Of a DNA stretch of 64,000 bases, positions 21,710 to 63,215 are shown piece by piece. Numbering within the stretch: position 1 is the first letter of the stretch; each line of letters opens with the position of its first letter. The notes beneath the pieces were generated by a model. That model did no database searches and was not told the origin of the DNA. It worked only from the letters and a program-made list of their open reading frames with translations. Origin of the DNA: Macrostomum lignano (lineage: Eukaryota); contig NIVC01001304.1 in assembly GCA_002269645.1 (NCBI GenBank), positions 253,233 through 317,232 of the forward strand, given 5' to 3'. A program made the translations under genes and the position numbers.

Positions 21710-24700
21710 TCAATAGGGCCTGAGGGTCGCCTGCACGCCCCGCAGCGCCCACTTCACCGACGGCACCCCGTCGCGCCGTAGCTCGACTTCGAATAGCGGC
21801 GTCTGCGGTGGCAGCGAAACGGCGGCTGCTTCGCTGACTGCGGCGGCCGGCTGCTGATGGCGGGAGAAGTACACCGGGCAGGAGTACACCTCGCCCTGCT
21901 TGGCCGGGTCAGCGGCCAGAGCCCGCGCCTCCTGGGTGATGCAGGTCAGCTGAAGCACCTGCCAAAGGGGGAGGGTAAAGGCTGTCCGATTGCTAATATA
22001 GAACAGCTAGGGCAGCTAATAGGACAGCTAGGGCAGCTAATAGAACAGCTAGGGCAGCTAATAGAACAGCTAGGGCAGCTAATAGAACAGCTAGGGCAGC
22101 TAATAGGACAGCTAGGGCAGCTAATAGAACAGCTAGGGCAGCTAATAGAACAGCTAGGGCAGCTAATAGGACAGCTAGGGGAGAGCCAGACTATAATTAG
22201 AAGTAATAAAACTGGACCTCTTCGTGCGCCCTGCCCTGCGCGTTGAGAGGCTTAAATTATCTATCGTGCAAATATTTTACGAACCGCTCTAAATGGCTTG
22301 TACACACAATAGGACAAAAATAAAACGGCCCTAATGAGGGCCTCAATACTCAACATTTCACAGACGAGATAGAAAAAAGATTAATATTGTCAATTTACAT
22401 GCATAAAATCTGACGAATGTCAGTACTGGGTTATTTTAGAGGGGCACAGTCCCGAGCACGTCTGCACCCAGTCAGTCCCAATTGATAATTGGTCTTCCGC
22501 CCCTATTGATGACTGGTCTTCCGCCCCTATTGATGACTGGTCTTCCGCCCCTATTGATGACTGGTCTTCCGCCCCTATTGATGATTAGTCTTCCGCCCCC
22601 TATTGATGACTGGTCTTCTGCCTCTATTGATGACTGGTCTTCCGCCCCTGTTGATGGTTGGTCTTCCGCCCCTATTGATGGTTGGTCTTCCACCCCCTAT
22701 TGATAATTGGTCTTCCGCCCCTATTGATAATTGGTCTTCCGCCCCCTATTGATAATTGGTCTTCCGCCCCCTATTGATAATTGGTCTTCCGCCCCCTATT
22801 GATAATTGGTCTTCCGCCCCCTATTGATAATTGGTCTTCCGCCCCTATTGATGATTGGTCTTCCGCCCCTATTGATGATTGGTCTTCCGCCCCGGCTTAC
22901 GGGCATTGGCGTGAATCCACCGGCAGCCTTGGGCGGCGCGTCCAGCAGCTCCCAGCTGCCCTTCTCCAGGCAGCCGTTCCACAGGCACAGGCCGTGAACG
23001 AAGATACCCTCAGTGGGCGGATCCCGGATGTGCTCACGGTCGCGCGAGCTGAGCTCGGCTGAGATGAGCAGGCCAGCCTCCGGCGAGCGGCCGGCGGCCT
23101 CCTGCAGCAGCAGGGAGAGCAGCGTGTTGGGCTGGGCCAGCAGCCCCAGGTTGTACAGCGGCATGCGGGCGCGGCCCAGCGCCAGGGCGCGATCGATCTG
23201 CGCCTGCCGGGCCGTCAGGTCTGACAGAAAGCCGGCCAGCGAGTAGTGCGGAGGCGGCGCCCCGCGGCCCCACAGGCGGCTCCAGCGGGCTGGCAGGCGG
23301 AACCGCTGAAGGTCATCTGCGGCCTCGGTGTCCTCCGGGCTGAGGCAGTCGCCCAGGCTGGCGGAGTCCATTAGGGCGTGCTTGATGCTGAGCAGGCTGT
23401 CGCGGACGGCTGTCACGAGCGTCTGCGTGAGCTGCAAGAATTCCAAGCGCTTTTGCTGATTATTTTCACATAAAAATTGCCACATAAAACTGCTCTGCTG
23501 AAAATTGCAGGTGTGTCGCATACGAACCAGAGATCGCAGCAGCAACAAAGCGCGCTGTCACAAAGACCTAAAGACCAACAGCTAAAACACCCGAGGGCTT
23601 CATGACTGCCAGACTTCTGCCAGGTGTGTTAGGAGCAGCTAGGGTTTCAGGTTGCCTCAGGCGTTATAAGGGCCGTATGCCACGCGGATTTGAGGCGTGT
23701 CAGAAGATACAAAAATACCTTAGGCAATAATTCTGACATCCCTGCGTCCTCTGAGACAACTGGAGCATCTGGTATGTCTGCATTTTCTGATACACCTGAA
23801 ATTCGTGTAGCATCTCTGGCACACCTGGAATCCCTGTTGTTCATAACGCACACCTGGTAACCATGGAACCCGACACACCTGTGCAAGACTCTAGCACAAT
23901 TAGTACAAGTTCCACAAGCTCTGTGCTGTCTTTCTGACTTAAAGCATAAAAAGCCAGCGGCTGCATCTCACGTGAAACTCGCGCATCATCCAGGCCGCAA
24001 AGGCCGGCTGCTGTGGATGCGGCTGCTGCTGCTGCTGCACCTTGGTCAGAGTCTCCAGCGCTGGAGCCGTCCTGGGCTGGCCCAGCTTCGCCAGGCCCGT
24101 GCTGCACACCTCCATCAGGTCGGCCAGCTTCCGGCTGCGCGAACCGGAAGCCACAGCGCCTTTAGAGGCCACTGAGGGCTTGAGCGAGCTTGGGCCCACC
24201 TGGCACTGGGAAGGACCTGTGTGATGGCGAAATATTTCAGATTCCATTTTGAATTCAGGTAAAGAAGAGGATTGGCTTGTATTCAAATGCCTTTTCCTGG
24301 AAAATGAAAGCACTGGATTCAGGTGAAGGAGGGGATTGGCTTGTATTCAAATGCCTTTTCCAGGAAAATGAAAGCACTGAATTCAGGTGAAGGAGGGGAT
24401 TGGCTTGTATTCAAATGCCTTTTCCAGGAAAATGAAAGCACTGAGTTCAGGTGAAGGAGGGGATTGGCTTGTATTCAAATGCCTTTTCCAGGAAAATGAA
24501 AGCACTGAATTCAGGAGAAGGAGGGGATTGGCTTGTATTCAAATGCCTTTTCCAGGAAAATGAAAGCACTGAATTCAGGAGAAGGAGGGGATTGGCTTGT
24601 ATTCAAATGCCTTTTCCAGGAAAATGAAAGCACTGAATTCAGGTGAAGGAGGGGATTGGCTTGTATTCAAATGCCTTTTCCAGGAAAATGAAAGCACTGA

Positions 24701-63215: not shown

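Follow-up and report, generated by a model that had tools for sequence, protein, structure and literature searches.

A Macrostomum lignano dynein heavy-chain gene is a likely flatworm orthologue of the non-motile dynein DNAHX

The window analysed here, 64,000 nt of Macrostomum lignano contig NIVC01001304.1 (assembly GCA_002269645.1, positions 253,233 to 317,232), holds most of an intron-rich dynein heavy-chain gene on its minus strand. We conclude with good confidence that this gene is a flatworm orthologue of DNAHX, a non-motile pseudo-motor derived from the DNAH5/8 lineage. Read this way, the gene is a genuine pseudo-motor of a sort already known, DNAHX having been described in a 2025 preprint. 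Coordinates below are window positions, and all features of the gene lie on the minus strand.

DNAHX was described as a non-motile subfamily of dynein heavy chains that branches from the DNAH5/8 lineage and ranges from sponges to frogs (Chai, Suchenski Loustaunau, Zheng, Yang and Zhang, bioRxiv 2025, PMC11785096); the preprint's text makes no mention of Platyhelminthes. The type protein, from sea-urchin sperm, is Lytechinus variegatus XP_041462850, which is 5,272 aa long and annotated as "DNAH8-like". In its AAA1 site, the Walker A threonine is replaced by valine, the sensor-I proline and tyrosine are replaced, the sensor-II arginine has become lysine, and Walker B is kept. The protein carries insertions in the stalk, at the pre-H3 and H5 positions in the microtubule-binding domain (MTBD), and at the pre-sensor-II position in the AAA4 small domain (AAA4S), where a beta-hairpin and a helix bind the C-terminal cap. 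Cryo-electron microscopy (cryo-EM) found it with ATP in AAA1, only in a pre-powerstroke state, and within a heterodimeric phi particle, "dynein-X". The subfamily has been tied to external fertilisation and long sperm flagella, and sperm flagella are its sole published role (all from PMC11785096).

The placement of the window gene comes from profile searches, a phylogenetic tree and whole-protein identities. In an exhaustive HMMER search with a profile of the AAA1-AAA2 region, a top block of matches scored 585-410 bits, and ordinary dyneins scored 370 bits or less. This block comprised an amphioxus protein (the top match), the caecilian Rhinatrema, two frogs, a JGI metagenome protein (P0008), reedfish and an acanthocephalan. 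The Rhinatrema protein (5,251 aa) is named "dynein gamma chain, flagellar outer arm-like" by NCBI; the reedfish protein has 4,856 aa and a protein from the sponge Sycon has 5,434 aa. The high-scoring acanthocephalan protein (P0010, from Pomphorhynchus) was not counted as DNAHX because it keeps the canonical AAA1 motifs. Word-indexed protein searches returned only three relatives of AAA1: fragments from Patella ("DNAH8-like") and Bugula, and a model from Macrostomum. A cleaned, DNAHX-specific profile matched seven proteins, one of them relevant (a cuttlefish relative), with no sea-urchin or further Macrostomum protein among its matches.

We built a neighbour-joining tree of 155 AAA1-AAA2 regions, covering this one region of the protein and not including amphioxus. 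The window gene falls into an 11-member clade with 100% bootstrap support, alongside the Patella protein, P0008, the amphibian proteins, reedfish, Argonauta and the Sycon sponge protein; inner nodes of the clade reach 67-80%. In comparisons over the whole protein, identity to the window gene is 44.5% for the Patella fragment, 35-41% for the relatives from vertebrates and amphioxus, 26-28% for Sycon and Argonauta, and 20-25% for canonical dyneins. Its best matches of solved structure are outer-arm chains, namely the Chlamydomonas outer dynein arm (ODA) gamma chain (7kzm_C), Tetrahymena Dyh3 and human DNAH5 (8j07), at 178-231 bits. An earlier first-pass annotation, made from the letters of the window alone, had taken the gene for a paralogue of the gamma lineage distinct from canonical DNAH5/8, and the clade, the identities and the motifs discussed below agree with it. 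It had also proposed a phylogeny; the tree of 155 regions puts the gene in the DNAHX-like clade. Like DNAHX, the gene has an origin among DNAH5/8 outer-arm chains, relatives from sponge to amphibians and a "DNAH8/5-like" database annotation. Taken together, these sequence comparisons indicate that it is very probably the flatworm orthologue of DNAHX.

We then compared the window gene with its relatives feature by feature, using an alignment of 17 sequences for the relatives and the published description for the DNAHX type. Every motif quoted in the first-pass annotation is present in minus-strand frames, at the positions it gave or a few bases off. In AAA1, the Walker A motif GPSGCGKT (50508..50531) keeps its Lys-Thr pair; the position occupied by threonine in GPAGTGKT is cysteine here and valine in most DNAHX-like relatives (GxxGVGKT). 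Walker B, WSLIDEV (50367..50387), keeps the catalytic Asp-Glu. The sensor-I loop (49906..49938) retains the Asn-Pro of MNPGYAGR but neither its gate tyrosine nor its arginine; in a HMMER alignment to solved dyneins it is one residue short of NPGYAG(R/A)QELP. Sensor II reads QNTFGLN (49640..49660), so that the arginine of HYDFGLR is replaced by asparagine. When the spliced AAA1 region is aligned to solved dyneins in the same way, NTFGLN comes to lie opposite YDFGLR, with no gap.

Mis-splicing, a possibility the annotation had raised, does not explain the missing sensor-II arginine, because the 80-nt intron upstream of the exon in question (49753-49674, GTGAGT..CAG) has strong ends and the correct phase; the exon itself (49516..49673) continues into a downstream donor, g/GTACAG, in phase 1. 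Nor does a neighbouring residue take its place: the next arginine, in AVLAR, corresponds to the second conserved arginine of the canonical SVLR and is no substitute. NTFGLN is also found in P0001 (UniProt A0A1I8FIK3), an M. lignano protein from another assembly that is identical to the window gene over runs of up to 60 residues where it is in frame.

The same losses recur across the clade. The sensor-II arginine is absent in all clade members, which have Q, A, S or V where the window gene has N, and the absence extends to the clade members from the other lophotrochozoans Patella and Argonauta, in which a check for the same substitutions had been suggested. The sensor-I loop differs in every member. 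Walker B is degenerate in several (FDDF, FDNF, FQDV, LAEG) and intact in the window gene (IDEV) and Patella (FDEA). The arginine finger contributed by AAA2, SPATIGRSG (46996..47022), keeps its arginine in the window gene, amphioxus and sponge and is lysine or glutamine in amphibians and reedfish. On these residues, AAA1 has degenerated less in the window gene than in any other clade member. The pattern suggests that catalytic residues were lost stepwise, lineage by lineage, after the loss of sensor II. The amphibian members have degenerated further than the flatworm copy, their Walker B Glu having become Asp (FDDF); the reedfish protein is gapped at that motif.

What the window gene retains in and around AAA1 is therefore the Walker A Lys and Thr, the Walker B Asp-Glu, the sensor-I Asn and the AAA2 arginine finger. 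With its nucleotide-binding residues kept, the site should bind ATP but not cycle normally. In its overall pattern it matches DNAHX, with the Walker A threonine, the sensor-I loop and the sensor-II arginine altered and Walker B kept. It differs from the sea-urchin protein in detail: the Walker A residue is Cys and not Val, the sensor-II residue is Asn and not Lys, and the sensor-I Pro is kept.

The insertions, which affect the AAA4S pre-sensor-II site, the stalk and two MTBD sites (pre-H3 and H5), give a second set of features in common with DNAHX. The AAA4S insertion of about 67 residues (40090..41021) lies between H6 and H7, and an intron with an uncertain donor (about 40904-40174) interrupts it. 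The caecilian, amphioxus, Argonauta, sponge and cuttlefish (P0179) proteins have an insertion at the same site in which the motifs Q[IV]PW.G and PN[LW]PY recur, and no such insertion was found in six canonical dyneins by alignment. AlphaFold2, run on a two-sequence alignment, predicts two strands followed by a helix, which at a pLDDT of 41.5 is only a hint; matches in the Protein Data Bank (PDB) to the AAA4 part of the protein all end just short of the insertion. From the start of CC1 to AAA5, the stalk and MTBD take up 434 aa; the relatives have 388-478 aa in this span and canonical dyneins 313-334. The excess over canonical dyneins is about 100 residues, and it includes two MTBD insertions at the alignment sites used by the relatives: a Gly/Lys-rich one at the pre-H3 site (38388..38516), and one at the H5 site with the motif G.TGEGSLLE (37396..37506). 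The latter motif and ARYSSEDAA are held in common with the relatives. With 4,804 codons in the window and the total extrapolated, the gene may also resemble DNAHX in being unusually long (above about 5,000 aa) through insertions.

Compared with the canonical outer-arm gamma chains (Chlamydomonas gamma, Dyh3, DNAH5 and DNAH8), the window gene has the same domain order and retains the P-loops of AAA1-AAA3. Unlike them, it does not conserve GPAGTGKT, HYDFGLR, MNPGYAGR or GxGGSGKxS, and it carries the additional ~67 residues in AAA4S and ~100 in the stalk and MTBD. Length, insertions and a degenerate AAA1 are, however, also traits of DNHD1, the vertebrate "orphan" heavy chain (PMC11785096, PMC8754002), and the gene could in principle be an orthologue of that protein instead. 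DNHD1 has been described as a separate lineage in which the catalytic residues of Walker B are missing; it was proposed as a structural analogue of DNAHX, to which it is stated to have no homology in sequence (PMC11785096). The window gene, unlike DNHD1, keeps the Walker B Asp-Glu. Its closest relatives are DNAH5/8-like proteins, including the one named "dynein gamma chain, flagellar outer arm-like", with none annotated as DNHD1, and its best solved relatives are outer-arm gamma-type chains. Judged from these annotations and from the published description of DNHD1, no DNHD1 sequence having been compared, we consider a DNHD1 identity very unlikely.

How might such a protein work? A mechanism can be sketched from the sea-urchin cryo-EM study (PMC11785096). 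DNAHX would have arisen through duplication within the outer-arm DNAH5/8 lineage (Chlamydomonas gamma) and then become a non-motile pseudo-motor. Its AAA1 would bind ATP, with poor hydrolysis or phosphate release; the AAA4S insertion would clamp the C-terminal cap and so keep the motor in its pre-powerstroke shape; and microtubule binding would be weakened by the insertions in stalk and MTBD. The protein may then pair with another heavy chain as a scaffold, template or inhibitor, as in the "dynein-X" phi particle, without producing force. By analogy with the sea-urchin protein, we favour, with moderate confidence, that this non-motile mechanism applies to the window gene. The first-pass annotation had called the product "catalytically weakened", and this description holds at the level of sequence, given that sensor II has lost its arginine and sensor I its gate tyrosine, and that DNAHX-specific insertions are present.

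An alternative is that the gene encodes an atypical but active motor, in which AAA1 hydrolyses ATP and force is delivered in some ciliary dynein arm. The intact Walker A, Walker B, sensor-I Asn and AAA2 arginine finger speak for it. So does the comparison with relatives: the window and Patella proteins keep both the Walker B Asp-Glu lost in several others (FDDF, FDNF, FQDV) and the arginine finger lost in the amphibian proteins. Against it, the sea-urchin protein keeps Walker B too and is nevertheless trapped with ATP (PMC11785096). Moreover, the sensor-II arginine and the gate tyrosine are gone, the protein has the AAA4S and MTBD insertions for which a block of powerstroke and microtubule binding has been proposed, and the Pfam MT domain scores below its cut-off. 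An active motor thus appears improbable, and we retain the DNAHX pseudo-motor as the preferred reading.

The gene model behind these comparisons was built by searching all minus-strand open stretches with a profile from eight relatives and enumerating GT/AG pairs for the junctions, with a codon-usage Viterbi pass as a cross-check. The part of the gene in the window (21710..63241) comprises 4,804 codons in 41 exons (14,388 coding nt), with coding sequence modelled from 63241 down to 21713 and a stop codon at 21712-21710. All introns are GT/GC-AG, phases are consistent over runs of 16 exons, and the model contains no in-frame stop. The span of 21710-63215 proposed in the first-pass annotation is right at one end, 21710 being the last base of the stop codon; 63215 falls inside the first exon seen. 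The model spans columns 392-4926 of the 4927 in the family hidden Markov model (HMM), and the caecilian protein P0005 is collinear with the window (tblastn) from residue 509 to its C-terminus. Because the model covers the profile from column 392 and P0005 is collinear from residue 509, some 400-500 N-terminal codons must lie beyond base 64000. The gene leaves the window at the 3' edge of the window, which is the 5' end of the gene, and the last 650 bases there are a 14-mer array. The gene had been called full-length; this description fails on the N-terminal codons outside the window and on the six assembly frameshifts considered below.

A few parts of the model are less secure. Five junctions are uncertain (among them 53609->52218, 40905->40173, 34417->34121 and 57171->56431), and a C-terminal stretch of about 80 family-profile columns (23489..25408) has unsolved junctions and one probable exon, 24157-23972. 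Exon skipping at 46.5 kb was considered and dropped, since a small exon (46598-46534) and a 78-nt intron restore the conserved WVQTEVKPIIPG. In a Pfam scan the heavy-chain architecture is complete (DHC_N1, DHC_N2, AAA1-6, stalk and C-terminal domain). In the same scan the stalk/MT domain reaches 19 bits against a cut-off of 24, AAA_lid_11 is also sub-threshold, and PF03028 was not detected in the gene product.

Six frameshifts interrupt the reading frame, all of 1 nt and none explained by an intron; five lack a base and one has an extra base. The first (60317..60320) lacks one G in a G-run, and changing GGG to GGGG restores PPVAG-A-VNWSRQLL. The second (59476..59479) lacks a base between MYNKVA and RLTAFEQLY, the third (58744..58746) has one extra A after LRLRE, and the fourth (58625..58628) lacks one G, with TG to TGG restoring FQPGLNNLA-W-NSTNIDGY. 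The fifth (56019..56022) lacks a base within ~45 nt after QQLNPE. The sixth (43991..43994), inside AAA3, lacks one C from the C-run after GGAP, the addition of which restores an Arg. In three of the six, one base added to a G or C run thus restores a conserved or plausible residue. What looked like a seventh frameshift, at ~57.7 kb, is explained by an intron of 62 nt (57758-57697, GTGAGA..ATAG) that connects the two frames in the correct way; a 41-nt alternative to it was discarded.

These lesions raise the possibility that the gene is a recently inactivated DNAHX pseudogene, decaying in a lineage with internal fertilisation and without sperm flagella. The first frameshift would truncate the protein in the tail, and no annotated or transcript-derived protein for the locus appeared among the database search matches. 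The biology of the host could also be invoked, in that the sperm of Macrostomorpha are aflagellate (PMC4446793) and the sole published role of DNAHX is in sperm flagella (PMC11785096). Several observations speak against this reading. None of the 4,804 codons is a premature stop, when 3.2% of random substitutions would make one, and the ~40 introns all keep GT/GC-AG ends and correct phase. The frameshifts themselves are also not placed as uniform neutral decay would place them: five of the six fall in 12% of the coding length, in the tail (P ~0.005 under uniform placement), and all six adjoin short homopolymers, with 9.4% of coding bases in runs of three or more. Furthermore, the DNAHX-specific motifs are retained in a group that is aflagellate as a whole, so that, if the loss of the flagellum is old, the gene would have outlived it under constraint.

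P0001, a UniProt model of the same locus from another assembly, provides an outside comparison. Set against window positions 53133-48639, it switches among three frames within single exons that are clean here; it is a scrambled prediction, and its assembly or gene model is riddled with indels. Because these scrambles sit elsewhere than the frameshifts of the window, indel noise appears to be common in M. lignano assemblies. Clustered 1-nt lesions beside homopolymers, the lack of stops and the intact splice sites favour assembly error over decay. We therefore think that the frameshifts are probably local consensus errors of a long-read assembly and that the gene is likely intact in the real genome. 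A decaying pseudogene seems unlikely to us, though not negligibly so.

Several observations count against the reading of the gene as a DNAHX orthologue and non-motile pseudo-motor. The inner clade that links the window gene to the vertebrate proteins has only 67% support, and the sister group of the clade is not settled. The DNAHX type XP_041462850 was absent from the protein search results, and a DNAHX chain was absent from the PDB copy searched. With Walker A and B, the sensor-I Asn and the arginine finger intact, some ATPase activity, possibly slow, could persist. The structure model of AAA4 is of low confidence (pLDDT 41.5). The assembly has six frameshifts, which went unseen in the first-pass annotation. 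P0001, a scrambled prediction, is the only same-species protein found, and the gene has no clean public protein. Finally, the projected full length of ~5,250 aa is an extrapolation, the N-terminus being outside the window.

Beyond AAA1, AAA2 and AAA3 have the P-loops GPPGCGKS (48562..48585) and GPRGGGKT (45025..45048). The AAA3 Walker B, LLLCIEDV (44153..44176, with Glu-Asp), had been read as degenerate on account of CIEDV; the sequence is as reported, but we regard it as a mild variant and no clear loss, because two acidic residues are kept and the reedfish relative has IEDIN. The AAA4 P-loop, GSIGTKLS (41601..41624), has indeed lost the lysine position of GK[ST]. Its degeneracy is a family trait and no peculiarity of this gene, because the lysine is gone in every DNAHX-like relative aligned (GS.GS.L.T).

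Two unusual proteins outside the DNAHX-like clade were seen along the way. P0108, a metagenome protein of 4,062 aa, has a degenerate AAA1 (GPSGVGKT, FDDL, MQPAGVQGR, HYHFGLL) and, on these motifs, may represent an independent pseudo-motor lineage. P0021, a Bufo gargarizans "DNAH8" (XP_044147017.1) in the canonical clade, has GPAAAGKT as Walker A and TMSPKHADFQ at sensor I and keeps FDEF and HYDFGLR. This is odd for a chain of the outer arm that is supposed to be active, and the cause could lie in the gene model or the assembly.

Between 21998 and 63994, almost all introns of the dynein gene contain a long array of minisatellite or microsatellite repeats, with periods of 4-121, as many as 63 copies and 76-100% matches. 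Examples are found at 24250-25154, 35578-36735, 40405-40902 and 41773-42521, and further ones at 47430-48270, 57945-58449, 62229-62836 and 63424-63994. When translated, these arrays yield long spurious open reading frames (ORFs) in all frames. On the 3' side of the gene, an open minus-strand stretch at 6150-6782 matches Pfam His_Phos_2 (histidine phosphatase, branch 2) with an E-value of 1e-8, above the cut-off, and probably represents an exon of the next gene downstream; Pfam scans of the ORFs in 1-21 kb found nothing beyond this fragment. Between the 3' side of the dynein gene and the phosphatase-like gene lies an AT-rich block at 10001-14000, where GC is 0.29-0.35, compared to 0.45-0.6 elsewhere.

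We lastly considered what the gene might do in this animal. M. lignano copulates with a stylet (PMC2795745) and, as a macrostomorph, has aflagellate sperm (PMC4446793), which sets it apart from the setting in which the preprint places DNAHX. Of the roles suggested in the first-pass annotation, the one in sperm is the hardest to uphold, a sperm-flagellar function being unlikely because Macrostomorpha have aflagellate sperm (PMC4446793). As macrostomid sperm lack axonemes, any function would be expected in somatic motile cilia. From the retention of ~4,800 codons, their splice sites and the DNAHX motifs, we infer selective maintenance of the gene, which would have been kept since the loss of the sperm axoneme if that loss is old. 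Tentatively, then, we suggest that a functional DNAHX is kept under selection in this copulating lineage with axoneme-less sperm, with a role in somatic motile cilia, such as those of the multiciliated epidermis or the protonephridia, in place of or in addition to one in the building of long sperm flagella.

Caecilians, which are represented in the top block of matches by Rhinatrema, fertilise internally. Because both Macrostomum and an internally fertilising caecilian have the gene, the tie of DNAHX to external fertilisation and the sperm flagellum becomes doubtful. As a very probable orthologue, the gene extends the known range of DNAHX to a flatworm, and its combination of an intact Walker B and arginine finger with a lost sensor II and tyrosine gate helps in working out the sequence of changes that silenced the motor. 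If true, a DNAHX of somatic cilia would contradict the sole published functional model and the link to external fertilisation, and M. lignano would be a convenient animal for RNAi and in situ work on what a non-motile dynein does.

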